DNA from: Perna viridis
Lineage: Eukaryota
Length of the DNA stretch: 64,000 bases
Direction: 5' to 3'
Assembly: GCA_037379345.1 (NCBI GenBank)
Contig: CM074516.1
Location: 18,910,001-18,974,000 of the forward strand
Shown: one piece after another, positions 7,396 through 64,000 of the stretch
Numbering within the stretch: position 1 is the first letter of the stretch
Layout: the number at the start of each line of letters is the position of its first letter
Program-made: the position numbers and the translations under genes
Notes under the pieces: generated by a model
Seen by the model: the letters and a program-made list of their open reading frames with translations, nothing else
Told to the model about the DNA's origin: nothing
Databases searched by the model: none

Positions 7396-10300
7396 TTATT
7401 TAAAGATAGGAGGCGAAATTCCACTGATACATTTGACTTTGACACAACTGCAAGCTGTTGACACCTTTTCTTTGTAATATTCTAGACCTGTTGTTGGACA
7501 ATCGATCAGCATGGTTCGGTAAACGTAGTTGGTTGGTCGGCAAAAATATTCTTTGAAGGTTCCGTAGTCAAATCTGCAGTATTGGTTGTTTCTCCTTTTA
7601 TCACTGTAAGAAGAGAGAAAAAAAAAGAGATTAGTACATGTATTATATAAAATCATAAAGTTATTTTTTCAGTATTGTAAGTTTCAATATGTTAATGTTC
7701 AGTAGACGTACAGTCTTATATCATAGATTATTTATCGTTGTTTGCATTATCAAAAAAATCAAACCCTCAAAAAAACACTGAGGCTCTATTCCTCGTGTCG
7801 CACAAAAAAGAATGTCCCTGTACTGGATTTCAGTATTTTTATTTGTTTTGAGTATTTCTTGCAGGCTAATTCCTTTTAAATTTAGATCATCCCATTTATT
7901 TGGTTCTATTGATGCTGATATTAGGTTATTTACAGCATCCCGAAATTTGTAATATTCATATGAATAATATTTTTGAATTTTTAAGTAGCTGTAGTTTGTC
8001 AACAAAGAATACCAACATAAAAAATAATAAATAGATAATTAGATTACTCTATTGGTCGAAAGTAAAAAAAAAACACAACGACCACACACGGGTCATAAAA
8101 ATCGACCAAACGGAACATAATGTAGTTTATTCTCCGAAATCTGCATAAATCTGAAGTATTTACTAGTAAAGAAATAATGAACCCAACATAGAAGTAATAA
8201 ACACAACATATTAAGTATCATTCTGTGTAAGAATCAGGCAATGTGTGGCACATCATTTTTTCCAATGTAGTCATTTTTGCCTAAAATATATTCAGTACAT
8301 CTAGAAAACAACCAAAAAGCTATTTAAGTTTATCCTTAAGCATCTGTGACGTAGATATATTTTGACTGCTTATATAGTGCAAAAGTGCGGGGAAATTTTC
8401 CCGTAACTTTTTCGTAGTGCTTTTGAATAAATTTGACCTATCAATATCTTAAAAATGCAAATTTCACAAACACTTTGATAGTCATTTCTGGTGGTTATCA
8501 GGTATAATTAATTGGTTAATGCAACACAATCTCTATGTTTCTTTCCTTCATGTGACACACCTTATATATATTTTGCCCGATTCTTAGACGGAGAAGTACT
8601 TAAGAGACGGACAGAATACAACAAACATCAGTATTCGTAAGAAGACTGGAATTAATTATTTATATGCTACCTTGTATTAACTAGTTTTTTGTTAACCAAG
8701 ACATTTTACGGGATGACATTAATATCCTTCTTAACCAATTTATCAACAAGGGTTACCGTACAAAATTGTCTTCTATTCCGAACTGACCTTATTTTATATA
8801 AATAAATATATGGTTTATTTTAGTCCCAAACATGTTCATGATAAAAAAGAATGGACATAATGGAACAAAACAAATGCCCCAGCGTATAACCTCCAAAATA
8901 GTACTTTCAAAGATCACCGAAATGTCTTCAACAAGTGTAAAACACACCTCTAACAATTGTAGTAAGCTCTGAAAGGCCCCAATAGCGGAAAGCAAACATG
9001 ATAAAATCGGATATTAAACCGCTTTTTTTACTGATTTAATAATGTTAAGAATATACGCCTTAGCTTCCTGACCATCGCAAAAAAGTACGAAAGTAATTCT
9101 ATGCAAAATGAATGTAAGAATGTCTGCTCGAAACTTACCCATTAAAACAGTCTGTTCTGTAAATTTTTTGTATGTTTCTGTCTGGTCCGTTAAGAACGAC
9201 TTGACAAACTTCATATCCATATGGAAGTCCAGTTAATGGATCATAAATGGTCTTGTTTACAAACTCCACAGGTACTTTGACCTCACGACATACTGGTTTC
9301 TTGACATAATCAGCCGTTTCACTGAAGGATTTTAAATATAACATTTTTATATATATTACGAAAAATCACAATTATAAACTGGGAAAAAAAGTAAATCTAA
9401 TTCACTTACAAAAGTACATATATAAAAAAAAATGTTAATGTATCAATATGATAATAAAAGTTTGAAATGAAGTTTTGCCTTACAAAATGTATCATATCTC
9501 TATCAAAATATTACTAACCCTGAGATCGAAATATTAAGCACAATTCAAAAAGAAGTTTATCTATAGTTCTGTTTTATTATTTGACAAAGCAATTAAATAT
9601 ACATGTTTATGCATACCCGTGAAACCAAATGCTATTACACAAGTATTTCTCAAGATTTGAAAGGGCTATTGTGTATTGATGCAGGTATGTTATTTTTAGC
9701 AGCACGATTTGTATAACTTTACCTGTAAGGACCTGGCTCTCCCAAGCATTCACCGCAGGACTTAATGTAATGTATAAAAGAATCATCACTTTGTACCAAT
9801 TTTTGTCGCAAACCACGCCTGTAAATAAATAAGACAGTATTCACAACCTTGTATGACAACCGCGGCCTTATAAAAAAATGACACCATTACATAACAAATT
9901 GTTTACAATTTTTATCTGTCAACTGTTTTTAGTATCAAAATAGGAATATTAATTAAATCGTTATATGTGCAATATAAACAAAAAAACCAATTTGCATGAT
10001 ATGCAACAGAAAAATAAATTGCACGCATGACTATAAAATTAGAAATTTGCAAAGATGATTTTTCTTTATTCAAAATTATACGTTCTGCGTGGAACGAAAA
10101 AATGTAAAATTCCCTTTTTTGGTTGGGGGTTTATTTTTGAATATTTTTGCCAACAAATGCAGGAAATGTTAAATTGCTTTGTTTTGAAAAAGTAAGAAAT
10201 CTTGAATTTAATCTCATGTAAATTATCAAATTATTAAATAAATTTATGTTTCTATATTATGCTTGATAATTTACAGAAAACGAGTTAAGAATTCTGAAGC

Positions 10301-11200
10301 AGCTCAATAATTAAGGAGCACTTCTGATAAGAATCATGCAAAATGTGATTCATGGTTGGAAAGCCTACATATTTTTATTTGTGGTATTCTGTTTGAAATG
10401 TGAACATAAATTAACTTGGGGCTTTTCATACAACCCTTGTTCTTAGGAGATAAAAACTATATAGAATGTACTGTAAAATACAAAATTAAGGTAGATAACT
10501 CTGTTAATGGCACTAAATAAAATAGAAACTATTGAATTTTCATTGTGCATTATCTCCGAAGAGCAACTTAATAATCAAAAATGCGTATTTTTTTTTACAG
10601 AATTTGCATCATGTTTTACAAGACTGCTACTTAAATGATAAAAAATCATAGAATATTTGACTTACATATCAAGTGGTGTATAATCCAGTGGTTTATCACA
10701 AATCCAGCTATGTTTTGGCAAACATTGGTCATACAAATATTTATAATTTTTGCAGAAATTCATTGGCACTGCAGAAGTGACGGCTACAAAAGCGGCTAAC
10801 AGCATAACTTTCATCTGTAATGATGTAACGAAAATTTTAGTGAATATTACATGTATTTTTATAACCGATAAAAGCCTTTTAATTTCAGTCACGGAACATG
10901 GATATTTATATGAAATAAATGCATGCATCATTTGTTGAAAATCAAGATTGCTGTGCTTATGAATGGTGAAAATATTATTAAATTTAAATCAAGCGTTTTT
11001 GAAAAGATAGTCTAAACTGGAAGATAGAAACAGATATTTTGCTAGGTTAAATTTTTCCCTTTTTACTTACAAAATTCAATTAAATCCAAAAGAAAACATA
11101 TTATTTGTTATACGAATGAAAGTAAGATTAAAGAAAATTGCAAAACCTTTCATTTTCGGCTTAATTTTTTTCCCTTTTTGTTAGTTTCGAAACTTACCAT
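7396..11200 (-). CDS. Gene A1: secreted Spaetzle/neurotrophin-like cystine-knot protein, 212 aa, 5 coding exons
   Basis: Manually spliced exons 11200-11198 (ATG|gtaag), 10814-10666, 9818-9723, 9321-9139, 7603-7396, all GT-AG, 639 nt in frame. Protein: MMKVMLLAAFVAVTSAVPMNFCKNYKYLYDQCLPKHSWICDKPLDYTPLDMRGLRQKLVQSDDSFIHYIKSCGECLGEPGPYSETADYVKKPVCREVKVPVEFVNKTIYDPLTGLPYGYEVCQVVLNGPDRNIQKIYRTDCFNGDKRRNNQYCRFDYGTFKEYFCRPTNYVYRTMLIDCPTTGLEYYKEKVSTACSCVKVKCISGISPPIFK. Hydrophobic signal peptide and terminal CxC; homologous exon by exon to A2-A5. The family call rests on motif recognition only. Confidence 0.88.
10315..10630. mobile_element. TTAA-flanked non-autonomous DNA transposon, family 2 (A1 intron 2)
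   Basis: ttaa|GGAGCAC...ACTGCTAC|ttaa, colinear with 5095-5489. Confidence 0.65.
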
Positions 11201-11525
11201 TTTTGTTTTGTTTTTGAACTGGTCAGTTAGAAGGTTATCTCATCAATGAACTTGTTAGACAAACTACTGCTATATATAATATGGTCAACGACAATAGTAG
11301 TGTTATTTTTGACAGCAATGATGGACGATCTGACGTATTTGGACAGAAACGGTCAAAATGACGCGAGACCTTAGGTCATAGGCGAGACTTCTATTTGTTC
11401 ATTGGCTAGTTTGTTCTATTTCCGCAACTGTAGTCCGCGTCAATAATTTTATTGTGAAAATTGTATAAAACGAGCCATTTCTCTCGATATTCTCACAAGA
11501 AACATACAGATCTACAAAGAGAAAT
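11201..11525. promoter_or_regulatory. Bidirectional promoter and 5' UTRs, pair A1/B1
   Basis: 325 bp between the divergent ATGs. TATA-like run at ~11271-11278 for A and TATAAAA at 11464-11470 for B; ATTGG (CCAAT) at 11401; TGACG cores at 11331 and 11359. Confidence 0.7.
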
Positions 11526-14014
11526 ATGGTAAGAAAGCTTTCTTATTATCTTTTTGAAAAGCTTGTTTGCAATAAAACATTGTTCCTTTATAACTTAATT
11601 GAAAAATAACAAACATAGTTGCATACATGAATTCTGGATTTTACATTTGAAGAAAGTTTAGTTCAGTGTATACTGAATGTATTCCAAGCAAATGAATTAC
11701 TGTTTTTTTATGCTTGGCTAAATAGTGGTAAAACTTGCAAATAGAAAGTAACCAAACACTTTTCAAATCAATTAGAAAATTATATATAAATGAAAGGTCA
11801 TTTTTGATGTCCAAATAAACAATTACATACCCGTTCAATTATGATAAACATTTAATGTATATCTTTTTGCTTTAACTTCAGATCAGAAAAGTCATTGTAC
11901 TAATCGTCTTGGTGCCCTGTTGTTTTGGGCTTCTGTTTAATAAGAACAAATGCATCGTGGATCCTATCGAAAATAGATGGCCAGATATTGTCAAAGTTTG
12001 CAAGGAACCGTTAGAATATAACCAGTAAGTACATGCATAAAGCATTATAAAAGCAAGATAAGAAATTATGGGAAAAGACTGACTATTTGGTTTTTTTTTC
12101 TGTACATGTATTATCATTGGATAAATTGACTAGATTAGCCTTAGTTTTCTAAATAGATAGTTTCAAGATATTAAATAATCTAAAAATGTAAAGAGCATTT
12201 GATCGACAAAAAAATATATAAAATGACAAAGATATAAAAAAAAATTATATACAACTATTGTATGTACTATATTCTGTCTGTACATTTTTACGTGAATACA
12301 TTACAGTTTATACCTGTGTTCGATGCTCCTTTTTTCTTCGTCTCTCTCTTAAACGAAAATTCTGATAAAATTACAAAAAGTCATTCAAATGGAATAAGGT
12401 CAATATAAGCAACCAATCATTAATAATACATGTAGTTATATTCTTGTTTGACAATCATTTGTTCTGAAAAGGTATTTTTGGAGCGCCAGGGTAATCTTTA
12501 ATGATCGCAACATTATATTAATGAGTATAAATTGAAGTAATTTATCAACACTATTAATTTTTCAAAATTTTCAGTGCTGCGATAGAACAAGCCTTGAAAG
12601 ACGACCCAGAAATGTTGATGTTTGTCGAAGATGCCAGTAAGATATACAGACCTGCAGTTCCCTACTCTGATCCCCAGTAAGTACTTAAAATTGTAACAAC
12701 CTCAAAGGCATGCCAGATCATAAGCGGAACATACAGTCTTGAAGTTGAATTAACTCTGGCCTCAAACTGTAAAAAAAAAAATATGGGAATTTCACTACAA
12801 AAAATTGGTAGATAGAATTTTTATAAAGGATACTTAACAGACTGTCTTTCATAGTTTAAAAAAGAAAATTGGGGTCACCTACCTTTTTTTCTTGTAATAT
12901 TAAAATATAACCCTAAAACTCCTGTTACATTTCTATAGAATATATAACCGCCAATTGTCTCCCCTTAAAAGAGGCTTGATACACTGAATATTTGTAATTT
13001 TACCATACAATTTTTATGCTTACATTTCTTTTAAAATTCAAAAATACTGTTTTTACATCATTTCACACATTACTACTTCATCTAAAATATGTATGTCTGT
13101 ATGATTTTGTACGATGACAGTCTGATAGGTGTGATCTGACTGAATAGCACAATGTTTCCTATGTTCTGTGTCTGTTGAACTTCATCTTAATCTAGAAAAC
13201 ATAATTTCCTGTACAAGAACATTTTATAATACTTGTATGTATAATTATTGTTTTAAGTGTTATATACAGTCTGAGATGTATATACTGGTACATTTTCGCA
13301 AAAACAAAGCTTACCGCTGTTGATGTTTAACGTGTTGTCGTCAACTTAAATAATTGATCTATCAACACAATTACAACATATTCATTTAATTTTCAGTATT
13401 TGTCCTGTCGATATTGGAGATAGCGTCAACGGTCCCCAGATTGTCGAATGTGGCAGCATCTGCCCTAGTTCATACGCCAACCTGACCACAGTGTGGTACG
13501 AATATGAACCAGGAAGGACAACCATGTGCAACGTAATCCGTCCATGGCAACAAGTTGTATATTACATGCAGTGCGGGTAAGTTTCTATCTAGTGTATACT
13601 CTTCATACACAGGATTCCCAGTGTAAATACATTTTGAACTCATAATGTTGTTCTCTTGTACATCATTCTATGCAAAAATCTGACAAGATTACAAGAAAAA
13701 GACAAAAGACAACTTTGAACCGTTTTATATATTTGAATACTGAAAACTTGAAAATCCCACAAAATTTAAAATATTGATTTATTTTCAGAACCAAATACCC
13801 CTTGGTTGATGGAATGGACAGTTCTTTCCAGTGCGTCCCAGAAAACATAATCAGGCGCAGAATTGCTATTTACTGCCCAAACCTTCCATCACAGTGTCAG
13901 AAAATGGATATAGATTTACCACAACACTGTGCAGCTAGCAGCTTTCGATGCAGAAAGAAGAAGGTCTCAAGAAGTATGCAGTTAGACAATTTATTCTCAT
14001 CTTTCGGATGGTAG
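11526..14014 (+). CDS. Gene B1: secreted Spaetzle-like protein with a degenerate cystine knot, 217 aa, 5 coding exons
   Basis: Exons 11526-11528 (ATG|gtaag), 11882-12024, 12575-12676, 13397-13576, 13789-14014; GT-AG, 654 nt in frame. MIRKVIVLIVLVPCCFGLLFNKNKCIVDPIENRWPDIVKVCKEPLEYNHAAIEQALKDDPEMLMFVEDASKIYRPAVPYSDPHICPVDIGDSVNGPQIVECGSICPSSYANLTTVWYEYEPGRTTMCNVIRPWQQVVYYMQCGTKYPLVDGMDSSFQCVPENIIRRRIAIYCPNLPSQCQKMDIDLPQHCAASSFRCRKKKVSRSMQLDNLFSSFGW. AATAAA at 14118-14123. Confidence 0.88.
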
Positions 14015-18372: not shown

Positions 18373-21300
18373 TTATTTAATGTTGCTTTGTTTACAGCCC
18401 ACTTTAACGCAGCTACAAGCAGTTGCAACATTTTTTGTCACGAATTGAAGTTTAGCAAATGGACAATAGACGACCATTTTCCTATTGACGAAATTGGTTG
18501 GTTTACAATAATAATCTGCTTTTGTTCCATAATCAAAAGAACACCTTTTACGGAATACTGCCTTTACTGAAGGATTACTGAAAGACAAAAGAAAACAATA
18601 TTTGAATGCAGTTGATAAGTAGCATATATATTCTAATCGAAAAATGTAATACTTTGTTTACTGGTGTTGTTTAATCCACATTAATCTTCTTTCCTTTTGA
18701 CCAAGCACAAATAATTCTTTTTTATTCAAGATGATGATATGGTCCCTGTTCTGCGTTCCTCAGACAAGCCACGTAGGGTGGTAGAAAAGTAGATAGGAAG
18801 GTAGGTAGATGTTGGTTGGTTGGTAGATAAATAATTATGACGAGAATGGATTGAAAAAAAAAGGAATAAAGATAGGTTGGTAAGTAGATAGGTAAATTGG
18901 AAGTTGTAGGTAGGTATGTAGATATGAAGTATAAGGAAAGGCGACAAAAATAGGTAGGTAGAAAGATATGTAGTTAGAGGGAGAAAGGTAGAGAAAGGTA
19001 GGCAGGTATGAGATGGCTTCATCTCAAATAATTTAATAAAAACATTTAAAGGTGAACTTATATTGAAGACCTTGAAAATATAGCAAGGGATGCAACAAGG
19101 TTGATGTTGCAGCTATTAAAAAATGCAGTATTATTGATAAACCGAAGTTGACAAATAAAAACTATTCCCCAATGTAACAAAATTGAAATGATATAGAAAC
19201 TTTCTTCTTAATATAACCATTGCTTGTTCCATTTTTTACCTCAACATCAAGCGTGAATGAAACATATCGGTTAAAGAAAGCGTTTTGTTGTTTTATACTT
19301 ACCCATGAAAACATTCTGTCTTGTAAACTTTCTGCACATTAAATTCTTCACTATTAAAGACAACCTGACAAACTTCATCTCCAAATTGTTGTGTGAAGAC
19401 ACGTACGAACTCAATCAGTGTTTTGACTTCTCGACATACTGGAAATTTATCATAAACTTTGGATGCACTACAATAGAATAGTAATAACAATGAAAATAGA
19501 ACAACATTAAAAAATACCAATCACGTTTATCTTTCGATATGCTGTACACGTGTTTCAAGGAGTAACCTCTCATCAGCAGCATTAGAATAAAAATATAAGT
19601 ATGAAGATGTTTAATCAAAACTTAATTGTATAAAGTAATCGAACTAAAAAAATATCGAAAAAGGAAGCCAAATATAGATTATTTTGTAGAATCATTGTCG
19701 AGCTCTTAGGGTAGTACAAATCATTTTAAGCCACATTTTGTCATGTTTTATCTGAATAGACAAAAACCAAACATGCATCATATGTTGTTCAATAAGTTGA
19801 TTTTATAAAATGTATATATTCATCGTGGTATCCGGTCAGTCTTGGTATGTAGTAGATCTGTCTAACCAGTTTATCCCTGAAGTCATATATCCCAATGTTA
19901 ATTTTGAATATTTTAATTTCTATGCTGAATAGTTCAATGTGATTGAGTCAAAATGTCAATATAACAATGTAGCTTATCTTAACCACAACCAATAACTAGG
20001 GAACTTCATTATTGGTACCCTAGTACACTAAATCGTGCAGGTAAATGACAAATGGCACTAACTATCGTTTCAAGAGGTTGGAAGTATTGATGCGCTTTTA
20101 AAATTTTATTTTTGTTTTCTTTAGTGTTTTTTGTTCCAAGGCAGTCGGTATAGTTTCGCTTTTTACCCTTTGACTTTAAGGACGCTCTGCTGTGGAAACG
20201 CAAGTCACCTGATCGTATTTCTTTTTCCCGATTGGCCAAATACTGATAACTTAATGGAGTTAAAAAAAACAGTATTGAAAAATTGAAATTGTGTTCGAAA
20301 AAAAAAAAAAATAACCAAAATTTTAATTTGCATGTCATGCGTTATTTTCTTGAAAGAAATATATACACCAAAAAGTAAAAGGTACAAAATTTTACTGCGT
20401 CGGCTATCTTTTTTTTTTTTAAAGATGTTACTTGTTTTTAATCAAACTGTAAGAGCTGTTTCCACGTTTTGGTTAGAATATTGGATAGAAACGATTTAGA
20501 GTCGGTGTATGCTGTGTTTAATTCTGCTTAAACCGACCCAAATTTCCATCTGTTTATGACTAATGAAACGTTGCAACAATACACATTAAATAAAACACCA
20601 CTAAAGCAATGTAATCATGTAATCATTTAAGAGCGATATTCTGCATTCACATTCTGCTAAGACTCCATGTTTGAATGAGGAATTAGATTGTCATGGAATA
20701 AGTGCAAACTGATGAATGGAACAAACCTATACATCGTATCAAGTAACTACACTTCCTAGAATCATGAAGGAGGCGATTAAGGAGAAATGTCATATATTTG
20801 AATTCATTTATCTTGTTAAGAAGAAAATTCTACAATGCTGAAAAAAAAATCTTCATATGTCTTTGAAGGGAAAAATATATGTTTTGCCTTCATACCTATT
20901 GTTATTTAACCTTAAATTTCTTTTTAGCAGAGGTCATTTCAGTACAAACATATATGACACATTAGATGATGATAGAAATCTCTTTTTGTGCAGATATATA
21001 CAAGCTTCCCCTACAAATATTGTTTTTATTTCTCGGTTGTTTAGGTGTCAGAACTAGAAGCGACTATTCTGACATTTAACTTAATATGCAATAAATGCCT
21101 TTGATCAACGTAAGTTCAAAACTGTTATTGATTTACTCATAATTTGTTTTTGAATCGGTCTATTCTCGAGCCAGAGCTCAGGGAGAGATCCAGACACTTT
21201 GAAAATGAGTGGTGCTAGCCGTAGTTTCTCTTAAAACGGGGGTAGGGGTGCTAGAATATTATTTATCATTTTTTAATCAATTTTACACATGAAAATGAGT

Positions 21301-21382
21301 AATTTTGCAACAAAAAAGGAGGGATGCTTACCCCCTGCACCCGCTGTAGTTACCTCTCATTTCATTTGTTTTGCGTTTATTT

Positions 21383-21454
<72 letters not shown>

Positions 21455-23722
21455 AACCAAATATCAGTACTGACATTTTAGATTACTTATTTAAAAATAA
21501 TTTTACAATTCCTTACATAACTGTGACATCTCCTTAATGTTCCGCCCTTTTAGCTGCTAAGCGTAAATTCTTAGTCATTGTAAAATGCACTTACCTTCTC
21601 TTATTAGCTGTGCCTATACATGCACCAGAAAGTAATTTTGAATACTCTATTGAACCGTTGTACAGTGCTGATTTAAGTGTATTTCTATCAATAGATAATA
21701 ATAATAAAAATACAATTAAGACACGTGGAACATTAAATGGATCCAGATAAATTGAAGTTTTAGCGTCTACAGAAACCGCTGGGAATTGTCTTGTTCTGGC
21801 ATTTATAAAATTGCAGGGAGGACCAGTGTTTAACCCAATTTTTGAGCAATAAAAATATTTTTCAATACTTCCTTTCTCTCATTTTTTTTGCTTTCTAAAT
21901 ATTATAATCCAATGTATTTTCAGAAAAACTACAAAATAACGTATTAATTTTTGCGGTCTACTAACTTTTGCTATTTTTATGATGGACGAAAAATACTGAA
22001 AATGAGTCCTCATAACATTGATTTTTAACACTAGATAGTTTTTTTTTAAACCGAAAAGTTTTACCGAAAAAAAATAACCTGATAAAACCAGCAGAAATTG
22101 GCAACTGCAAAAAATCATATATTAAAAATAACTTCTGGTGACATAATTACTCTATTGAACCAAATGACTGATTGATATGCATGTGTATATGTGTACATAC
22201 ATGTAGCCGTTCCTTTGAGGAACCCTACGAAAAGAAAATATCACATAGGTTTTCATAGTATTATTTCTGTAAAGGACTTCGTTTCACACGTACAAATGTA
22301 ACGTTTAAGGTATCAAGTTCAAAAATACTTCAAGGAAATAAGAATTTAAACATTATGAAAAGAATATAATACAAGGATAACAACTAGACTGGATAAATAG
22401 ACATTCACAAGAAAGGAAATGAAATAACTAAAGTAATAACACGTATAATGAAAAAAAAAAGAAATTGAGCAACTTGGAAACAACTGAAACTTAGAGAATG
22501 GACCAGGTGCACCGGTAAGGTAACTGTCCTTTGCTTTTCGAGAAATTACTACCGACCTTATACCGTGAAATTACTATTATTCGTGGGGTATAAATCTTCG
22601 TGGCAAAACTACGAAATTTGGTTCCCAACGAAAAGGAGATTTTCATTGATGTGGATACCGAAAACCTCAAAAACACCAATTCAAGAATCCACGAACTTTC
22701 TTCCCTAATCCGCATAAATTGGTATCCACGAATTAAAGTACTTTCACAGTATCTATGAAGTGTGATTGTACGTACCTATCAAGAACATCGTATACTGGTG
22801 GTTTGTCGCACATCCATTCTCTTGAGGGAAGACATTGATTGTACATTCCATTGTACTGTTCACATGCAGGTTTGCTCCTTTCGATAGAGGGAACAAAGTC
22901 AAGAAATCTTTGGAGAGGTGTTGATGTCAATTGTTCAGATTGAACTAAGGAGGCAGCCACAGATAAAACGACCAATGTCCTGAACTGAACAACATAATTT
23001 TGCATGGTTGAATTTATTTCTTTATTACATTAGACAATAAAAACATATTGTGCTGAAAGACACAAAAAATAATATACGTATAAAAAATAAAATATAGTTT
23101 TAAAAGTAATACAAAGTAGAATAGAAATCCTAAGTATAGTAATGAGATAATTAATTGTAAAATAGGATTACGTTTTACGAAAAACGCCTAGACTTGATAC
23201 GTAAGTACAACTTGTCCCGCAAAAGAAATCTTTAAGCTGTGTTGGCCCAAGTAATTATAACTTGATTATTTGCGATAAGCCATTGATAGTTCTGCTACAT
23301 TTATAGATTTTCAAACATACCCATTGTTTAAGAAGAAACTGAGTATTTTTCAACCAAGGAATGATTTCTAAAAAAAGAATTTAGTAGAGACCTTTTAAGA
23401 CGCATTTCCTCATAACCATGATTCAGGAGTCTGTTACTCAGATATTTATGGCGTTTTGGAAAATCAGATAAATTAGTATTTTCTCAAGCGTAGCGAATTG
23501 ATTGTGATATATAAACACCATATGCAGAAAATATTTTCCCAAACGTCAACTAAAAATCTAATATAAAAAAACAAAAACTTTGAATAAGACTTTTGAACCT
23601 GGTTATTTTCCCTCTATCAGTCATCAAATTTTGAATCTAGTGTAAAAGACGACTCTAAACACTCTGATCAACATTGATATCTTTTAGAAATATGAGTTAG
23701 ACTTAAAATGTTACCTTACCAT
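18373..23722 (-). CDS. Gene A2: secreted Spaetzle/neurotrophin-like cystine-knot protein, 223 aa
   Basis: Exons 23722-23720 (ATG|gtaag), 22984-22776, 21684-21595, 19467-19303, 18577-18373; 672 nt in frame. MFRTLVVLSVAASLVQS...LQRFLDFVP...CEQYNGMYNQCLPSREWMCDKPPVYDVLDRNTLKSALYNGSIEYSKLLSGACIGTANKRSASKVYDKFPVCREVK...EVCQVVFNSEEFNVQKVYKTECFHGNPSVKAVFRKRCSFDYGTKADYYCKPTNFVNRKMVVYCP...VATACSCVKVGCKQSNIK. Confidence 0.88.
18770..19015 (+). repeat. Degenerate (GTAG/GGTA)n purine-rich low-complexity tract (A2 intron 4)
   Basis: Repeated aggtag/gtagat units. Confidence 0.7.
21387..21452 (+). repeat. Poly(A) tract, 66 nt (A2 intron 3)
   Basis: Uninterrupted run of A. Confidence 0.95.
22561..22751. 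mobile_element. TA-target MITE (A2 intron 2)
   Basis: TACCGTGAAATTACTATTATTCGTGG ... CCACGAATTAAAGTACTTTCACAGTA imperfect TIRs. Confidence 0.7.
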
Positions 23723-24086
23723 TTTACTCATGCCTATTTAGTGCCCCGCAAGTCTTTATTCCAAATAATTGTCTCTTTCTTTTATAGTTGTACCCATAAG
23801 GAGAAAAAAAACCTTTGAAAATAATCTTCACAGCCAATCAGACTACGTCTTTTCAATTAATGAACCTGGGTCAAAGTCGTTATAACCAATCAGAGGTCGT
23901 CAAATTAATAAATGATCTAGGATCAAAGGTACCAACTTGTTATGAATTTGGACTTTTTTACGGCTTGTTTTTAAGCAGTATATCAAAGAATAAAAAACCG
24001 CAAATGTCACCACCTAGTATATATAAGTTCTTCATTTCTATGATTACATTAAATTTGAAAGAGCACATTGAAATAGTAGAAACAAA
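23723..24086. promoter_or_regulatory. Bidirectional promoter and 5' UTRs, pair A2/B2
   Basis: 364 bp; TATAAAA on the minus strand at ~23780-23786, TATATATAA at 24018-24026, two CCAATCA boxes (~23834, ~23886). Confidence 0.7.
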
Positions 24087-42069: not shown

Positions 42070-44021
42070 ATGGTAAGTGAAATTAAACCTTTATATGATG
42101 TTGATATATGATATACACAGAAGGCAATATTCAGTAAGAAAAAATAATTCTATTCCCTTTAAAACAGCAAGAAAGACACCCTATTATTGAATTTTGATGT
42201 TAATACATGCTGTCTACGATTAAGTCAGTTTTTGCTGTGGAATAACAATGAATGTTTAAATCATTACGGAGGATGTCTTTAAACAATACGTGCCTCTATT
42301 TGATGATACTTTAAAAGGTTCAATTCTCTCTTTTTTAATTTTTAGATTAAGTATCTAGCTATTTGCTTTATCGCATTTACTGCAACTAGTGCCTTTAAGC
42401 AAACATGCAAAATTGATCCTGATGAACTGAAATGGTCAAGAGAAAAGATATGTGATCAACATATGGATTATCCACAGTAAGTGAAACTTTTCTTTTCTTT
42501 TTATAAGAAAATAAAGAAAACAAAATCTAAAACATAAGAAAATAAAAGAAAAAAAAATAACAAACTATAAACAAATAATCGAATACAAATAATCCAACAA
42601 AGACCAAAAAATACTTTAAGCAATATATCGTCATAACGACATACACAAGAGAAAAGGCTATTTCCATTTCTAATGTCATTTACTTCTATTTCTCGCAGTG
42701 ATACAATAGAAAAGGCGTTACGGAATGATAAAAAGATGTTGGACTTTGTTGAAAATGCTTCAGAATTCTACAATCCAGATTATTCTTACAGTAACACAGA
42801 GTGAGTATTATGAAAATAAGTTTATAAGACTGATGTGTAATAATTTCATATAACTTAAACTATTTCTTGCAGACATCGTTTAAATATGTATCTTAAACGT
42901 GCCCTAAGTACTTTCTTAATCTGAACAAATTTTCGTTGTTTCCATTTCTTGTCATTTTTCGTTTTAAGACCCGACACGAAAATGACATCAGTTTCATTTT
43001 AACTCCTGAAAATAGGAATAAAAAGCTTATAGCAAACTTACATTTTCTTATATGATTTTTAATTTTGTCTCATTTGAAAGACATTATATCTTACACCATA
43101 CAAAGTATTTTTTACTTAGAAATAGTAAAAAATAAATAAATTGCTAATTAATATAAAATAAATCTTAAGGTATATGACGAATTTCAGAACTTGTGATGCC
43201 TACCTAGGAACAGAACAAGATTTCGTACAAAAGAAGGTTGAATGTGGAAATATCTGCCCCGGTAGAAATGTAAATCTGACCACAGTCTGGTACGAATATG
43301 AAAACAGCCGTACTATGTGTAAAGTAATTCGTCCATGGCAACAAATTGTTTCCTACACCGAGTGCAAGTAAGTGCAGTGGTTTTGTTTGGTTCAGACATT
43401 ACATTTAATTGTGCCTACTTGATGTTTTACTAATTTTCATATAAAAATGATGCAATAACCGTTATGGTACTGTACATGAATTTATGTTTTGATTCGTCGC
43501 TTTTATATTAATATAGATTATGTATTAACCAAGGTAGATATATTTGAATTAATTTAATTTAAATATAACTGAGCACATTTTTTGAACGTCGGATTGATGG
43601 TTCCGGTATTCCATTTTGCGATTTGGAAATCTAACCAATCCGAACCATACATAAACGGGACACTTTATGATAATATTGTTATCTAAAGTCTTTTTAAAGT
43701 AACTACTGATGATGTAAAACCTGCCTAATCCGAAAACATATTAATGAATTTAATTTTCATTTCTTTGTATTTTTTTTTTATTTTAGTGAAAAAACTCCGA
43801 ACGTACCAAGAATGGATAAATCGTTCCGATGTCTACCAGAGAACCCTCTGAGAAGGAAAATTGCAGTCTACTGTCCAGATATCATCCCTCAGTGTAAATT
43901 GATGGAAATTGAACTTCCACAACATTGTGCCGCCAGTCAACTCAAATGTATAAAGAAGAAAGAAACCAAAATGGCCATACTTGATTCACTTTTTGCTAAT
44001 TGGGGTAGTAGTTTCTTTTAA
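42070..44021 (+). CDS. Gene B3: secreted Spaetzle-like protein with a degenerate knot, 216 aa
   Basis: Exons 42070-42072, 42346-42476, 42699-42800, 43188-43367, 43787-44021; 651 nt in frame. MIKYLAICFIAFTATSAFKQTCKIDPDELKWSREKICDQHMDYPHDTIEKALRNDKKMLDFVENASEFYNPDYSYSNTETCDAYLGTEQDFVQKKVECGNICPGRNVNLTTVWYEYENSRTMCKVIRPWQQIVSYTECNEKTPNVPRMDKSFRCLPENPLRRKIAVYCPDIIPQCKLMEIELPQHCAASQLKCIKKKETKMAILDSLFANWGSSFF. Confidence 0.9.
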
Positions 44022-46339: not shown

Positions 46340-46575
46340 TGACTTGTTATGGTCAACTCGACTGGGGTTTCTAGAAAAGCAGAGGACGCTTACTCTACCG
46401 GTGCACATGGTCCACGCTCCCAGTTTTTAGTGGAGTCCGCCGAGTTGCTTATTTACTCTTGTTACGTTGTATGTATTATTTTAGTTAATATATTGTCTTG
46501 GTAGTGTTTGTATATTTCTCTTGTCTGGTGTTGTACCTGGATTACATTCTTTTGATTTCCGCTATCATCTTGGTA
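46340..46575 (+). repeat. ~230 bp interspersed repeat family
   Basis: Copy, duplicated at ~57220-57455. Another 5'-truncated copy lies at 47433-47597, with partial copies at ~4935-5020 and ~22490-22540. Confidence 0.8.
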
Positions 46576-50392: not shown

Positions 50393-52485
50393 TTAAGCTT
50401 TGCAACTCATTTTAACACAGCTGCAGGCAGTAGCAACCTTATGTGTAGTGAGCACAAAGCCGGACACTGGACAATGAACGGCGATTTTCCTGGAGACGAA
50501 GTTTGTTGGTTTGCAATAGTAGTCTACCTTTGTTCCATAATCAAATGCACACCTTTGTTGGAATTCTGCCTTAACTGAAGGGTCACTGTAAATGAAAATA
50601 TAAAAAAAATAAATACATTTGTTTCTATGTATATATTATTTATTTTGTTCATGATCATTGTTGAGTGTGACTATTTTCCCTTTCTAGTCTTTAGCGTTAG
50701 AATATATACTTTTAATAACCGTTCGAATCTGGGGTCTTTTGATTACACTTATATAAATGCATCCTAAAGACGAAATTAAAAAAAAGACACGGATATTTCA
50801 TAAAGGAACGACACATATCTTCGACTACTGTCACCACAAAAACAAAGACAATGATAGATGTTCTGTACATTAAGTGAATCATGAATCGGAAATATGATTT
50901 ATTCCAAAAAAAAAGTAACACTTACCCATTAAGACATTCTGTTCTGTAAAGTTTTTGAATATTGGCCTCTTCATTATTAAAGACAACCTGACAAACTTCA
51001 TTTCCCAAATTTACGAATTCAATCAATGTTTTGACTTCTCTACACACTGGATGTTTTGTATAAACTTTTGATACACTACAAAAAGAAAACATTTATGAAC
51101 AAAGTGATACACGTGAGTAGATGGACCTGAGTGTCGTGTAATGCATATGACAAAAGTTGCATTTTAGATGGGTATAACAGTTTAGAAATAATTAATGTAA
51201 GTATTGATTACAACAATTAATCTTTACTTTTTAATTCCTGGTGTATAGGTATTTAATGGTTTTCGTTATTGTCATTTATTGATTACTGAAAAGTACAGAA
51301 GTAGGTATTTCATCATCGTGAATAAACGTTGTACACGCAACATCTTTAAAAAATATATATCTTACGTTTTATCCTTGGCATTGCCTAAACATGCTGCTGA
51401 AAGGTGGTTGACAATCACATCAGGTGCATGGACTAGTTCTTGGATGAAGGTAGCTCTAAATAAACATTTTAAATATATGTATTATTTTAATAAATTACTT
51501 AATTATTTGATATCAAATACCTTATAAAAATTCATTTTGCGATTTTGTTGTACATCTTTTTTGATGTACTAATTACTACATATATGATTAACATGTGTTA
51601 ACTATTTTGATAGAACTAACTACACTGTATATTCCAATAACTGATACATGTATCAATTGATTTTTTGCAATCAGCACTATATGTTCTCTATGATAAAACA
51701 TAGTGAAATGAAAATAAATGCAGAACTTGGTGCATATTCATTAAAATGTTAAATAATCGTACTTATTAAAAACTTTGTAATCTGCTGGTTTATCACACAT
51801 CCAGTTTACTGGAGGAAGACACTGATTGTACATTCCATGGTACTGGTTACATGCTGCCAACGTTCGTTCTTTCAATGGAACAAAATCGAGGAATCTCTGA
51901 AGACCTATATTTGGTGAACTTGAATGTCCATGTGGTATTATCAAGGAAAATGCCCCGGAAAGAGAGGCTAACATAAAAACAGCAAACAATGGCATCATCT
52001 GTAATAAAAGCAGATAGTTTCATTCAGTATAATGTGTTTCATTACATTCAAAATTCCATAAAACGTATTTATTACATTTCCTTCCTACTACTGATTTCGT
52101 TGATGGTGACACATCGATATTCAGGTTGTTGATGCAGCGATGATAAAATAGGTGGTGCCATATTTGTATATATTGTCAGTGACAGCATATCAGCATCTAG
52201 TATACTGTCAGTGCATTTTAATTTTTCAAATAACAAAACTGCTGTACGCAAAAAATAAAATAGCTTTTAAGAAAGGTCAAATTTATCAAATTTGTTGATC
52301 AGGATTATACAATTGTCAGACGCTAGTTTGTTTTGTTTTCGTTTTGGGAGAGGGGTGACAGATATAACGAAACATGGATAATTTTAGTATATTAAACACG
52401 AATTAATAGCAAATACCGTATAGTCATTAAGTATACAAATAACAAAATGGATGAACTTGTATATGTAAAAATTCGATCTTACCAT
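50393..52485 (-). CDS. Gene A4: near-identical paralog of A3/A5, 223 aa
   Basis: Exons 52485-52483, 51998-51763, 51455-51366, 51075-50926, 50585-50393; exon lengths (3/236/90/150/193) match A3 and the frame is intact. Confidence 0.9.
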
Positions 52486-52816
52486 TTTGTTTTGTTCCTG
52501 TACTTATCGGAGACTGTTCTTTATGTTTCCAGTTTTACATTATCCTACTTTTATAGTCGATTTTTCAGGAAATAAAAAACATTTCTTGGAACCAAACTAA
52601 GAAATAAACTTAGACCCAATCAGCGATCTTTTTTAAATGGTCTTACGTCATGTATATACACAGGTGTAATAACATGACGTTTTTAATGGTCTGTTGTTAA
52701 GTAGTTAATCACAACTTATAAAACCACAGATGTCAACATTTAGTATATATATAACCTCTGTAACTACAATTTCCAACATACAAACCATACACTTTGAACA
52801 GTTAAGATTATTGAAA
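52486..52816. promoter_or_regulatory. Bidirectional promoter and 5' UTRs, pair A4/B4
   Basis: 331 bp, nearly identical to the pair 3 promoter with the same motifs. Confidence 0.7.
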
Positions 52817-54779
52817 ATGGTAAGTGAAATTAAACTTTTATATGATGCAGATATAGGATATACACAGAAGGCAATATTCAGTAAGAAAAAAAAATTCTAT
52901 TCCCTTTAAAACAGCAAGAAAGACACCCTATTATTGAATTTTGATGTTAATACACGCTGTCTACGATTAAGTCAGTTTTTGCTGTGGAATAACAATGAAT
53001 GTTTAAATCATTATGTAGGATGTCTTTAAACAATACGTGCCTCTATTTGATGATACTTTAAAAGGTTCAATTCTCTTTTTTTTTATTTTTAGATTAAGTA
53101 TCTAGCTATTTGCTTTATCGCATTTACTGCAACTAGTGCCTTTAAGCAAACATGCAAAATTGATCCTGACGAACTGAAATGGTCAAGAGAAAAGATATGT
53201 GATCAACATATGGATTATCCACAGTAAGTGAAACTTTATTTTCTTTTCTTTTTATAAGAAAATAAACAAATAAAGAAAACAAAATCTAAAACATAAGAAA
53301 ATAAAAGAAAAAAAAAAACAAACTTGAAACAAATAATCGAATACAAATAATCCAACAAAGACCAAAAAATACTTTAAGCAATATATCGTCATAACGACAT
53401 ACACAAGAGAAAAGGCTATTTCTATTTCTAATGTCATTTACTTCTATTTTTCGCAGTGATACCATAGAAAAGGCGTTACAGAATGATAAAAAGATGTTGG
53501 ACTTTGTTGAAAATGCTTCAGAATTCTTCAATCCAGATTATACTTACAGTAACACAGAGTGAGTATTATGAAAATAAGTTTATAAGACTGATGTGTAATA
53601 ATTTCATATAACTTAAACTATTTCTTGCAGACATCGTTTAAATATGTATCCTAAAAGTGCCCTGAGTACTTTCTTAATCTGAATAAATTTTCGTTGTTTC
53701 CATTTCTTGTCATTTTCCGTTTTAAGACCCGACACGAAAATGACATCAGTTTCATTTTAACTCCTGAAGATAGGAATAAAAAGCTTATAGCAAACTTACA
53801 TTTTCTTATATGATTTTTAATTTTGTCTCATTTATTTGCACGACATTATATCTTACACCATACAAAGTATTTTTTACTTAGAATAGTAAAAAATAAATAA
53901 ATTGCTAATTAATATAAAAGAAATCTTAAGGTATATGACGAATTTCAGAACTTGTGATGCCTACCTAGGAACAGAACAAGATTTCGTACAAAAGAAGGTT
54001 GAATGTGGAAATATCTGCCCCGGTAGAAATGTAAATCTGACCACAGTCTGGTACGAATATGAAAACATCCGTACTATGTGTAAAGTAATTCGTCCATGGC
54101 AACAAATTGTTTCCTACACCGAGTGCAAGTAAGTGCAGTGGTTTTGTTTGGTTCAGACATTACATTTAATTGTGCCTACTTGATGTTTTACTAATTTTCA
54201 TATAAAAATGATGCAATAACCGTTATGGTACTGTACATGAATTTATGTTTTGATTCGTCGCTTTTATATTAATATAGATTATGTATTAACCAAGGTAGAT
54301 ATATTTGAATTAATTTAATTTAAATATAACTGAGCACATTTTTTGAACGTCGGATTGATGGTTCCGGTATTCCATTTTCGATTTGGAAATCTAACCAAAC
54401 CGAACCATACATAAACGGGACACTTTATGATAATATTGTTATCTAAAGTCTTTTTAAAGTAACTACTGATGATGTAAAACCTGCCTAATCCGAAAACATA
54501 ATAATTAATTTAATTTTCATTTGTTTGTATTTTTTTTATTTTAGTGAAAAAACTCCGAACGTACCAAGAATGGATAAATCGTTCCGATGTCTACCAGAGA
54601 ACCCCCTGAGAAGGAAAATTGCAGTCTACTGTCCAGATATCATCCCTCAGTGTAAATTGATGGAAATTGAACTTCCACAACATTGTGCCGCCAGTCAACT
54701 CAAATGTATAAAGAAGAAAGAAACCAAAATGGCCATACTTGATTCACTTTTTTCTAATTGGGGTAGTAGTTTCTTTTAA
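52817..54779 (+). CDS. Gene B4: near-identical paralog of B3, 216 aa
   Basis: Exons 52817-52819, 53093-53223, 53457-53558, 53949-54128, 54545-54779; exon lengths (3/131/102/180/235) match B3 and the frame is intact. Confidence 0.9.
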
Positions 54780-60279: not shown

Positions 60280-60793
60280 TTAAGCTTTGCAACTCATTTT
60301 AACACAGCTGCAGGCAGTAGCAACCTTATGTGTAGTGAGCACAAAGCCGGACACTGGACAATGAACGGCGATTTTCCTGGAGACGAAGTTTGTTGGTTTG
60401 CAGTAGTAGTCTATCTTGGTTCCATAATCAAATGCACACCTTTGTCGGAATTCTGCCTTTACTGAAGGGTCACTGTAAATTAAAATAAAACAAAAAATAA
60501 ATACATTTGTTTCTTTGTATATATTATTTATTTTGTTCATGATCATTGTTGAGTGTGACTAGTTTCCCTTCCTAGTTTTTAGCCTTAAAATATATACATT
60601 TAATAACCGTTCGAATCTGGGGTCTTTTGATTACACTTATATATATGCATCCTAAAGACGAAATTAAAAAAAAAGAATACGGATATTTCATAAAGGAACG
60701 ACACAAATCTTCGACTACGGTCACCACAAAAACAAAGACAATGATAGCTTTTCTGTACATTAAGTGAATCATCAATCGGAAATATGATGTATT

Positions 60794-60829
<36 letters not shown>

Positions 60830-63163
60830 TAACACTTACCCGTTAAGACATTCTGTTCTGTAAAGTTTTTGAATATTGGCCTCTTCATTATTAAAGACAA
60901 CCTGACAAACTTCATTTCCCAAATTTACGAATTCAATCAATGTTTTGACTTCTCTACACACTGGATGTTTTGTATAAACTTTTGATACACTACAATAAGA
61001 AAACAATTATGAACAAAGTGATACACGTGAGTAGATGGACCTGAGTGTCGTGTAATGCATATAATAAAAGAGTTATACCAAACATTTTAATGAACTTGAA
61101 ATGGACCAAATATATGTTGAACATTTAGAAAGATAATCAAGAAAATCATTTAAATTGTACAACGAAACCTGACCAAGTCAAACACTTGATGAATTCTTTT
61201 AAACCGGTTCAAATGTATTAATGTATTCGAACATAAATCTTAACTGAACCAATTTGAAATTACGAAAACTTTCATTTTAGATGGGTATAACAGTTTAGAA
61301 ATAATTAATGTAAGTATTGATTACAACAATTAATCTTTATTTTTTAATTCCTGGTGTATAGATATTTAATGGTTTTCGTTATTATCATTAATTGATTACT
61401 GAAAAGTACATAAGTAGGTATTTCATCATCGTGAATAAACGTTGTACATGCAACATCTTTAAAAAAATATATATCTTACGTTTTATCCTTGGCATTGCCT
61501 AAACATGCTGCTGAAAGGTGGTTGACAATCACGTCAGGTGCATAGACCAGTTCTTGGATGAATGTAGCTCTAAATAAACATTTTAAATATATGTATTAAT
61601 TTAATAAACTACTTAATTATTTAATATCAAATACCTTATAGAAATTAATTTTGCGATTTTGTTGTACATCTTTTTTGATGTACTAATTTGACTTACATGT
61701 ATGATTAACACGTGTTAACTATTTTGATAATAGAAAGAAATAGAACTAACTACATTGTATATTCCAATAACTGATAAATGTATCAATTGATTTTTGCAAT
61801 CAGCACTATATATTTTCTATGATAAAACAGAGTGAAATGAAAATAAATGCAGAACTTGGTACATATTCATTAAAATGTTAAATAATCGTACTTATTAAAA
61901 ACTTTGTAATCGGCTGGTTTATCACACATCCAGTTTACTGGAGGAAGACACTGATTGTACATTCCATGGTACTGGTTACATGCTGCCAACGTTCGTTCTT
62001 TCAATGGAACAAAATCGAGGAATCTCTGAAGACCTATATTTGGTGAACTTGAATGTCCATGTGGTATTATCAAAGAAAAGGCCCCGGAAAGAGAGGCTAA
62101 CATAAAAACAGCAAACAATGGCATCATCTGTAATAAAAGCAGATAGTTTCATTCAGTATAATGTGTTTCATTACATTCAAAATGCCATACGAACTAATTG
62201 CTGTTCTTAAGTAACAAAAGTAATCAATTGTATCCTCCATAATTTCAGGATCAACTATTTCGATAAATTCTGAACGATATGTTCTTGTGGAAGAAACTTC
62301 GTTTTAGTTTTATTTTGTATTAATATATGTTAGCTTATATTTCAGAAAAGGAAATCAATAGAACATTCATTTCAAGTTTTGCATGTTGTAAAATTCTCGT
62401 TTTGAATAATCACAGGAGATCATAAGTTGTATCCATTACAGGTCATTTATCTTATAAATGGAAGAAAAAGTCATGATGCATAAAAAAGAATGATACAATG
62501 TTATTATTCAATCCGAAGGCTATTGTAAAAAAAACCAATCCATACTAGCCAGATACATATTTACTTTTATACACAGACAAGGACAATGTATTGATTGGAA
62601 ATAATAAAAATATACAGATGTGACCCAGAGTCGGGGTTACTCAAGACCATTTGCCGATTTCTTTTCTATTCGTGACTTGTATCTTATTTCTATTGATAAT
62701 AACTATTTTTATCAGTTTAATTTAAATACAACGTATTTATTACATTTCCTTCCTACTACTGATTTCGTTGATGGTGACACATCGATATTTAGATTGTTGA
62801 TTCAGCGATTGTAAAATAGGCGGTGCCATATTTGTATATAGGGTCAATGACAGCATATCAGCATCTAGTATACTGTCAGTGCATTTTAATTTTTCAAATA
62901 AGAAAACTGCTGTACACAAAAAATAAAATAGCTTTTAAGAAAGGTCAAATTTATCTTCTTATTCAAATTCGTTGATCAGGATTATAAAATTCTCAAACGC
63001 TAGTTTGTTGTGTTTTCGTTTTGGGAGAGGGGTGATAGATATAGCAAAACATGGACAATTTTAGTATATTAAACAGTATGTAATAGCAAATACCATATAG
63101 TCATTAAGTATACAAAAAAACAAAATGGATGAACATGTATATGTAAAACTTCGATCTTACCAT
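60280..63163 (-). CDS. Gene A5: near-identical paralog of A4, 223 aa
   Basis: Exons 63163-63161, 62127-61892, 61569-61480, 60989-60840, 60472-60280; frame intact. Confidence 0.9.
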
Positions 63164-63497
63164 TTTGTTCTGTTCCTGTACTAATTGGAGACTGATTGCT
63201 CTTTATGATTCCAGTTTTACATTATCCTACTTTTATAGTCGATTTTTCAGGAAATAAAAACATTTCCTTGAACTGAACTAAAAAATAAACTAAGACCCAA
63301 TCAGCGATCTTTTTAAAATGGTCTTACGTCATGTGTATACACAGGTGTAATAACATGACGTTTTTAATGGTCTGTTGTTAAGTAGTTAATCACAACTTAT
63401 AAAACCACAGATGTCAACATTTAGTATATATATAACCTCTGTAACTACAATTTGCAACATACTAACCATATACTTTGAACAGTTAAGATTATTAAAA
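63164..63497. promoter_or_regulatory. Bidirectional promoter and 5' UTRs, pair A5/B5
   Basis: 334 bp; the same TATA/CCAAT/TTACGTCA/TGACGT motifs are retained despite flanking substitutions. Confidence 0.7.
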
Positions 63498-63908
63498 ATG
63501 GTAAGTGAAGTTAAACTTTTAGATGATGAAGATATAGAATATACACAGAAGGCAATTTTCAGTAATGGAAAGAGAAGCTTTTCTATTCCCTTTAAAACAG
63601 CAACAAAGACACCCTATTTTTAATTGTTGATGTTAATACATGCTGTCTACGATTAAGTCAGTTGTTCTTGTGTAATTACAATGAATGTTCAACATCATTA
63701 CGGAGGATGTCTTTGAGCAATACGTGCCTCTCTTTGATGATACTTTAAAAGGTTCAATTCTTATTTTTAATTTTTAGAATAAGTATCTAGCAATTTGCTT
63801 TGTCGCATTTACTGCAACTAGTGCCTTTAAGCAAAAATGCAAAATTGATCCTGATGAACTGAAATGGTCAAGAGAAAAGATATGTGATCAACATATGGAT
63901 TATCCACA
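63498..63908 (+). CDS. Gene B5, 5' part only (continues beyond the window)
   Basis: Exons 63498-63500 (ATG|gtaag) and 63778-63908: MNKYLAICFVAFTATSAFKQKCKIDPDELKWSREKICDQHMDYP|gtaag, homologous to B3/B4. Confidence 0.85.
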
Positions 63909-64000
63909 GTAAGTGAAACTTTATTTTCTTTTTTTTTTTTTATAAGAAAATAAACAAATAAAGAAAACAAAATCTAAAACATAAGAAAATAAAAGAAAAA

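Follow-up and report, generated by a model that had tools for sequence, protein, structure and literature searches.

Head-to-head pairs of genes for predicted secreted cystine-knot proteins in the mussel Perna viridis: a candidate two-subunit ligand

Paired genes and the interval between them

The genome of the mussel Perna viridis contains a tandem array of genes for predicted secreted cystine-knot proteins, in which each gene of one type, A, lies head to head with a gene of a second type, B. The window, that is, the whole stretch of DNA analyzed here, comprises 64,000 nucleotides (nt) of contig 6 (CM074516.1, 18,910,001-18,974,000) of this 723-Mb genome; it is AT-rich, with a G+C content of about 31%, and positions given below are window positions. 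Self-comparison of the window, together with an analysis of reading frames and splice sites, identified five A genes on the - strand, each divergent from a B gene on the + strand, and no further family member in the window beyond these five pairs. This is the arrangement, with no gene unpaired, that an earlier reading made from the sequence alone (the sequence-only reading) had described.

RNA evidence came from two sets of RNA contigs (X1 and X3) and two raw stranded RNA sequencing runs (X10 and X11), and concerns pair 3 only (38900-44100). Gene A3 (38940..41739, - strand) is made of e3 (38940-39132), e2 (39447-39596), e1b (40058-40147), e1 (40479-40714) and an exon 0 whose ATG lies at 41737-41739, and gene B3 (42070..44021, + strand) of an exon-0 ATG (42070-42072), e1 (42346-42476), e2 (42699-42800), e3 (43188-43367) and e4 (43787-44021). 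The A3 junctions 39132|39447, 39596|40058 and 40147|40479 were all present in the X1 and X3 contigs and in X10 reads, with GT..AG on the - strand, and the B3 junctions 42476|42699, 42800|43188 and 43367|43787 were all present in the RNA contigs with canonical intron ends. The intact frames previously claimed were thereby upheld, since the coding exons are all open and six of the six internal junctions of pair 3 occur in RNA contigs and in stranded reads, with one amendment: the RNA revealed an additional A exon of 90 nt, e1b, which had been overlooked by exon-by-exon similarity and has homologues in A1, A4 and A5. The loose ends of the A3 and B3 transcripts revealed an upstream exon terminating precisely in ATG; the one preceding 42345 in B3 reads ...AAAAATG and matches 42056-42072. 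A and B consequently have a common plan, with an exon 0 consisting of the 5' untranslated region (UTR) and the ATG, a phase-0 intron, and four coding exons with phase-2 introns between them.

In pair 1, A1 (7396..11200, - strand) comprises e3 (7396-7603, with the stop codon at 7396), e2 (9139-9321), e1b (9723-9818), e1 (10666-10814) and the exon-0 ATG (11198-11200), an open frame of 211 amino acids (aa) whose nearest database protein is the Mytilus galloprovincialis A-type protein P0034 (74% identity over 192 tree-alignment columns, 84% in e1b). Its partner B1 (11526..14014, + strand; exon-0 ATG 11526-11528, e1 11882-12024, e2 12575-12676, e3 13397-13576, e4 13789-14014) is about 80% identical to the Mytilus B proteins P0004 and P0038. 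In pair 2, A2 (18373..23722, - strand) has e3 at 18373-18577, e2 at 19303-19467, e1 at 22776-23005 and a candidate exon-0 ATG at 23720-23722. The A2 counterpart of e1b is a decayed relic at about 19792-19876 (- strand), with an in-frame TGA and no donor site, whose homology to A1 e1b is still recognizable (DEYIHFIKS against DSFIHYIKSC). Judged by its sequence, the A2 frame is open only with e1b skipped, so that A2 probably either skips this exon or is impaired. B2 (24087..31085, + strand) has its exon-0 ATG at 24087-24089, e1 at 25639-25769, e2 at 26578-26676, e3 at 30013-30195 and e4 at 30851-31085. In pair 4, A4 (50393..52485, - strand; e3 50393-50585, e2 50926-51075, e1b 51366-51455, e1 51763-51998, exon-0 ATG 52483-52485) has 94-100% amino-acid identity to A3 exon by exon, and stands opposite B4 (52817..54779, + strand; exon-0 ATG 52817-52819, e1 53093-53223, e2 53457-53558, e3 53949-54128, e4 54545-54779). 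In pair 5, A5 (60280..63163, - strand; e3 60280-60472, e2 60840-60989, e1b 61480-61569, e1 61892-62127, exon-0 ATG 63161-63163) faces the 5' part of B5 (63498..64000, + strand; exon-0 ATG 63498-63500, e1 63778-63908), which is truncated by the window end and has its e2-e4 intact just beyond.

The shared promoters between the start codons, assigned to neither strand, occupy 11201..11525 in pair 1 (325 bp, with outward TATA-like boxes and TGACG motifs), 23723..24086 in pair 2 (364 bp), 41740..42069 in pair 3 (330 bp), 52486..52816 in pair 4 (331 bp) and 63164..63497 in pair 5 (334 bp), and the ATG-to-ATG distance in pairs 6 and 8, outside the window, is again 334 bp. Within the interval, some 200 bp separate the outward-facing TATA boxes, and a CCAAT box and a pair of inverted TGACG motifs are present as well; in pair 3 the A TATA box lies at ~41800-41810 (- strand) and that of B at ~41998-42008. 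Each pair is transcribed outwards from one bidirectional promoter of ~330 bp, so that A and B would be produced simultaneously and by the same cells. Transcripts of A3 and B3 were both found in X1 and in X3; X10 gave reads on the expected strand for both genes (depth ~8 in A exon 1 and ~4 in the last B exon), and both were nearly absent from X11. This pattern is thinly consistent with co-expression of A and B. The co-expression assumed in the sequence-only reading is borne out as far as both genes are transcribed in the same RNA runs and have 325-364 bp of common promoter, at low depth and in four runs.

A search of the whole genome with a last-exon profile gave 18 matches, 16 of which are the members of eight A/B pairs on contig 6; the two remaining matches are weak: the first lies immediately beyond pair 8, next to fragments of A- and B-type exons, and the second on contig 10 (30 bits). 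Each of the 16 genes has its partner, and this search found no unpaired copy in the genome. The coding exons are open in all 16. Pairs 1-7 have one orientation, and pair 8 is inverted as a unit and still divergent. In pair 7, outside the window (84,300-84,620 in the extended coordinates), a deletion of ~300 bp fuses the A7 5' UTR to the first intron of B7. Lost with it are the promoter common to the two genes, the TATA boxes of both, and exon 0 of B including the ATG; the coding exons remain open, and this pair is probably silent. Within the window, a unit of ~10.7 kb occurs three times with 82-96% identity (at about 38.6-49.4, 50.0-59.9 and 59.9-64.0 kb), and older repeats of the A and B exons are recognizable at the protein level at 7.4-14.0 and 18.4-31.1 kb. 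Since pairs 3-8 are this ~10.7-kb cassette duplicated as a unit, they are not independent cases of pairing; as judged from the sequences, independent support for pairing is provided by pair 1, pair 2, the ancestor of pairs 3-8, and the other species described below.

Repetitive elements are also found in the array. A short interspersed repeat of ~160-230 bp, with copies 75-88% identical, is found in both orientations in introns and spacers (2465-2650, 4936-5022, 24397-24630, 27897-28119, 28781-28994, 46354-46577, 47434-47596 and 57237-57457), and the spacer between pairs 1 and 2 contains a ~190-bp unit twice in tandem (15826-16206, 85% identical). At 58623-59018 (+ strand) there is an open frame of 131 aa resembling the C-terminal part of a reverse transcriptase of the long interspersed nuclear element (LINE) type; the cassette alignment blocks are interrupted there (58036-58619, then 59079-59903), which fits an insertion in that copy.

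Predicted proteins, fold and family

The A proteins have about 211-223 aa and the B proteins about 215 aa, with a signal peptide in both. A and B can be aligned over their full length, with a common L(D/N)FV motif in the N-terminal part and a common segment RKI(A/V)V(H/Y)CP, and they have an intron at the identical position, after the second knot strand. Together, these features indicate that A and B are distant paralogs and fit an inverted duplication. Two cysteines, one of them preceding the (F/L)(D/G)YG motif and the other being the second of the terminal CxC, are missing from mytilid and oyster B and always kept in A; this correlated loss is best read as the loss of one putative knot bridge, CysIII-CysVI. 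The B-side genes of Solemya and of gastropods retain the full knot, so that the broken knot would be a later, pteriomorph feature. Cysteines number 13 in A3-A8, 14 in A1 and 12 in B. The last ~15 residues of B (e.g. 43970-44018) form a conserved amphipathic tail of the type D-S-L-F-x-N-W-G, which is found in mytilid B and in scallop A-like proteins, not in mytilid A, and is helical in the B model (residues 200-210).

Searches were run exon by exon, full-length analyses were made on the database orthologues P0034, P0004 and P0038, and joined spliced models were used only for alignment, counting, substitution ratios and the tree. AlphaFold2 models of the Mytilus orthologues, P0034 for A (predicted local distance difference test, pLDDT, 70) and P0004 for B (pLDDT 77), both have N-terminal helices followed by long paired strands. 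Foldseek gave no match for either model at E up to 0.001; neurotrophins, IL-17A and sclerostin appeared at E around 0.004-0.01, with NGF, IL-17 and sclerostin tied in rank. A structural aligner independent of Foldseek matched almost only cystine-knot proteins (growth factors). Horseshoe-crab coagulogen (PDB 1aoc) was at the top for both models, with Z 5.2 and 136 aligned residues for A and Z 6.5 and 131 for B, spanning N-terminal helices and knot; it was followed by noggin, IL-17A, gremlin, sclerostin and NGF (Z 4-5.6) and, at Z 3.0-3.4, by Spätzle, and C. elegans alpha2/beta5 also gave a weak match. Since none of these Z values reaches the guide value of 8, they establish the fold class but do not identify the family. 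On these models, from which disulfide connectivity is not readable, A and B are predicted to be secreted proteins of cystine-knot fold in the Spätzle/NGF/coagulogen superfamily. Signal peptides and models thus confirm that part of the sequence-only reading which had called the products secreted cystine-knot proteins.

Its further description of them as Spaetzle-like found only loose support. PF16077 (cut-off 27 bits) matched neither the exons of the window nor the Mytilus orthologues P0034 and P0004, and in a six-frame search of the genome it gave nothing above threshold and no match at the A/B locus; Pfam is insensitive on single exons, and the splitting into exons makes the outcome uninformative for the window itself, where the sole single-exon match was a weak DAN (E 0.011). 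In 5 of 25 relatives PF16077 did match, always below threshold (best E 2.1e-4), which made it the commonest Pfam match, followed by Sclerostin and DAN. A profile of the 25 relatives found only sclerostin among PDB sequences (E 0.002, in the last finger), which is not decisive, and protein language-model neighbours carry Spaetzle, NGF, IL17 or Noggin families. 'Spätzle-like' is therefore a superfamily label and does not denote membership in the Spaetzle family.

Spätzle is an arthropod Toll ligand, described as a homodimer, and both Spätzle and NGF have a basic processing site before the knot. The mussel proteins are similar to Spätzle (PF16077) in being secreted, in carrying the cystine knot at the C-terminal end behind an N-terminal region, and in the motif succession C...Q.(V/I)...(E/D)C, then C...C, then a final CxC. 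They differ in giving no match above the model cut-off, in lacking a basic activation site and in having extra cysteines, and the solved Spätzle structure lies well below coagulogen among the structural matches (Z 3.0-3.4 versus 5.2-6.5). To our knowledge, Spätzle is not encoded in divergent paralog pairs.

Coagulogen is a clottable monomer that is cleaved twice; in structure, the literature places it close to Spätzle and NGF. Instead of being signalling ligands, A and B could be structural proteins of this kind, polymerising in haemolymph clotting, wound plugs or a secreted matrix. Coagulogen, with its helical N-terminal part and NGF-like knot, is the best whole-chain match of both models, over almost the whole mature chain, and a high copy number under purifying selection (see below) would suit a need for dosage. 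However, the Z values are under the aligner's advised trust level, Pfam Coagulin has no match at E up to 1 in the Mytilus orthologues or the 25 relatives, no Arg cleavage sites of clotting-enzyme type were identified in the mussel proteins, and expression depth was low in the RNA runs seen. We know of no paired genes for coagulogen, and of the explanations considered here we regard this one as the least probable.

An IL-17 identity, suggested by the C-terminal CxC and the fold matches, was ruled out: PF06083 has no match in the 25 relatives (E up to 1) and none at the locus. Of its 24 matches elsewhere in the genome (23 above the cut-off on their own), most lie on contig 9, and contig 6 has none between 18.9 and 19.0 Mb. 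Contig 9 carries a cluster of at least 20 canonical IL-17 domain loci (about 12.7-37.0 Mb), several in close groups (e.g. 36.89-36.98 Mb). Invertebrate IL-17 proteins are cystine-knot cytokines expanded in molluscs, and IL-17 type T1C is described as having lost the 3/6 disulfide (PMC11087794), as mussel B appears to have done; the PF06083 domain sets them apart from the A/B locus and from the relatives.

Linkage in other molluscs, ancestry and selection

A profile search of 1.8 billion representative proteins recovered 33 relatives, and those with a named source are all molluscan (Mytilus species, oysters, scallops, unionids, Solemya, abalone and Gigantopelta). Their NCBI labels are all 'uncharacterized' or 'hypothetical', and UniProt calls the oyster and scallop A-like proteins 'Spaetzle domain-containing'. 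The nearest database proteins have 60-80% identity to pair 1 and 40-50% to pairs 2-5.

Linkage of two distinct paralogous genes is kept in mytilids, oysters, Solemya, Haliotis and Gigantopelta, which include gastropods as well as several orders of bivalves. In M. californianus and M. galloprovincialis an A-type and a B-type gene are head to head, and a second locus on the same M. galloprovincialis chromosome contains a further array of A/B pairs, with 403 bp between coding starts. Saccostrea echinata has A (-) and B (+) head to head, with ATG-terminal first exons in both, and one extra B, and in Crassostrea gigas A and B are convergent and 9 kb apart. Two family members are head to head in Solemya velum; its - strand gene has tandem 50-bp repeats in or near the first coding exon (L004:4615-5042), with repeated partial matches to residues 25-54 of P0019. 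Haliotis cracherodii has two divergent paralog types as tandem head-to-head pairs, and the same two types are adjacent and convergent in Gigantopelta. In Pecten maximus and in the unionid Potamilus, with one gene each, no partner was found within 10 kb. The synteny check put forward in the sequence-only reading therefore gave linkage in five groups and single genes, within this distance, in two species.

The abalone pair resembles those of P. viridis in the intervening sequence as well. In H. cracherodii the ATGs are 311 bp apart, each closing a very short first exon that consists of the ATG and 3 or 6 further nt; between them are a CCAAT box, a perfect TGACGTCA and TATA boxes that face outwards. 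The promoters of abalone and mussel have a design in common, which chance would hardly explain.

In a maximum-likelihood tree the mytilid A clade has a support of 100/100 and the mytilid B clade 96/91, and the inner topologies of A and B are broadly mirrored, with pair 1 grouping with the Mytilus orthologues and pair 2 sister to pairs 3-8. These mirrored trees indicate that the cassette duplicated as a unit, which bears out the amplification of a cassette proposed earlier. Two mismatches were observed: among the A genes the second Mytilus array falls in the clade of pair 1, but among the B genes it is sister to all the rest, and pairs 7 and 8 are together on the B side only. Oyster B joins mytilid B (93/84) and the deep nodes are unsupported (41/37); furthermore, in an approximately unbiased (AU) test a Solemya-specific duplication was not rejected (p 0.235). 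Consequently, an origin of the pair before the bivalve radiation is argued from the common layout and not from the tree.

Among young copies, the ratio of non-synonymous to synonymous substitutions (dN/dS) spans 0.06-0.27 in A and, for the most part, 0.25-0.54 in B, and all comparisons are below 1 with the exception of B5/B6 (1.46), a near-identical pair with a single synonymous difference. These low values imply purifying selection, so that the young copies look like an amplification of dosage and not like the diversification of a repertoire that the sequence-only reading had envisaged. The two halves of the cassette have diverged unequally, the A half (38622-41300 versus 50075-52060) being 82-89% identical and the B half (41309-45327 versus 52058-56073) 96%, with a synonymous divergence (dS) of 0.116 for A3/A4 versus 0.025 for B3/B4. 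Such a difference points to gene conversion or unequal crossing-over within the array.

The faster evolution of B, its missing CysIII and CysVI and its extra conserved amphipathic tail could point to unequal roles, with A as the ligand and B, its knot weakened, as a modulator (a decoy, an antagonist or a chaperone) made in step with it, and the cystine-knot antagonists noggin, sclerostin and gremlin are indeed among the structural matches. These matches are weak, however (Z < 7), and do not discriminate families; the full knot of the Solemya and gastropod B-side genes makes the broken knot a later feature of pteriomorphs; and a functional role for B is drawn from sequence and predicted structure. 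We consider such a modulator improbable, if a little less so than the clotting proteins discussed above.

Evidence bearing on a joint action of A and B

The explanation that we find best overall, with a probability of about 0.5, is that A and B are ancient paralogs derived from an inverted duplication and driven from one promoter, and that they most likely act together as a non-covalent A:B heteromer, that is, a two-subunit ligand. Both genes encode predicted secreted proteins of ~200 residues in which a helical N-terminal part, tethered by disulfides, precedes the cystine-knot domain; A keeps the full knot and B is without the CysIII-CysVI bridge. The ~10.7-kb cassette was multiplied as a whole in recent times, apparently for the most part to the benefit of dosage. 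Of the common promoter, the transcripts in the same runs, the kept linkage and a weak prediction of the complex, a heterodimer offers the most economical account, as yet unproven. The analysis establishes the gene models and their splicing, the common promoter, transcription of both genes, paralogy, joint duplication, purifying selection, the fold class and linkage conserved across molluscs; that A physically associates with B, and that the two serve in signalling, we infer from these data, and a Toll-like receptor is one guess as to the receptor.

The complex was predicted in three runs from residues 17-215 of M. galloprovincialis A and residues 20-213 of M. californianus B. The A:B score was 0.50, versus 0.00, 0.27 and 0.00 for the controls, with the verdict 'weak support'; the runs agreed in at least 71% of contacts and partner pLDDT was at least 69. 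In the calibration of this score, only 5 of 78 solved complexes passed at 0.60 or below, and so did every one of the four mismatches that passed. We therefore give this single prediction only slight weight.

Several points weigh against a heteromer. By this calibration, complex scores in the range obtained mislead more often than not, except for guesses that were probable beforehand, and the score cannot separate A:B from A:A or B:B. Cysteine parity offers no argument for a single A-B disulfide. Inspection of the sequences revealed no RXXR or dibasic site before the first knot cysteine in A1-A8 or B1-B8, whereas scallop relatives have RHRR or RTR before the knot. Pairing is not obligate, given the single genes of Pecten and Potamilus within 10 kb, the extra B of Saccostrea and the convergent genes of C. 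gigas and Gigantopelta. The co-expression is drawn from four runs at low depth, and a common promoter together with duplication of whole cassettes could hold the genes together without any contact between the proteins.

This last point leads to the alternative that A and B are co-regulated but form independent homodimers, the layout being kept by the compact bidirectional promoter and by whole-cassette duplication. Homodimers are the rule in the Spätzle/NGF/noggin superfamily, and the same exceptions to pairing fit this alternative well: orientation was broken in C. gigas and Gigantopelta and neither gene was lost, single genes and an unpaired B exist, and pairs 3-8 count as one young cassette; the weakness of the complex prediction agrees with it too. 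On the other hand, one A-like and one B-like gene stay linked from abalone to mussels, no partner was lost in the three old pairs of this genome, and a knot disulfide was lost in B and never in A, which suggests unequal roles. We regard independent homodimers as doubtful, while giving them more credence than a modulator or clotting proteins.

The two-subunit ligand that we favour has precedents of several kinds. GPA2/GPB5, bursicon alpha/beta and IL-17A/IL-17F are paralogous cystine-knot subunits whose genes are adjacent in some lineages; GPA2/GPB5 and bursicon differ in belonging to another branch of the knot proteins, the glycoprotein-hormone type, and in lacking the N-terminal helical domain, and in the mussel the heterodimer is predicted. 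For none of the three do we know of a reported tandem amplification of the pair or a conserved bidirectional promoter of ~0.3 kb. Head-to-head paralogs that work together on a short bidirectional promoter include ABCG5/ABCG8 and paired plant nucleotide-binding leucine-rich repeat (NLR) genes (PMC6824678, 10.1101/2022.12.20.521344). These belong to unrelated protein families and are analogous in genomic logic only. Taken as a whole, the interpretation offered in the sequence-only reading, a pair of co-expressed partners amplified as a cassette, is partly supported.

Molluscs have very large repertoires of Toll-like receptors, and endogenous ligands of the Spätzle type are almost undescribed in them. 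A 2020 paper on mussel immunology mentions a spaetzle homolog outside arthropods as described in one clam only (PMC7773633). Our search of the literature, whose coverage left out most subscription journals, found no description of the A/B family or of its pairing. A bolder version of the two-subunit ligand, which we think unlikely as it stands and slightly more so than independent homodimers, is that the A/B module is more than 450 million years old and common to gastropods and bivalves, that its promoter and mirrored ATG exons would supply equal amounts of the subunits of an obligate heterodimeric ligand of Spätzle/coagulogen type, and that this is possibly a missing class of endogenous ligands for the expanded molluscan Toll-like receptors. 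The layout of A and B provides a concrete and cheaply testable hypothesis, two subunits from one promoter. If A and B do pair, they would constitute a heterodimeric ligand in a branch of the knot proteins usually treated as homodimeric, and the interval between them would be an unusually old bidirectional promoter keeping two partners in step.

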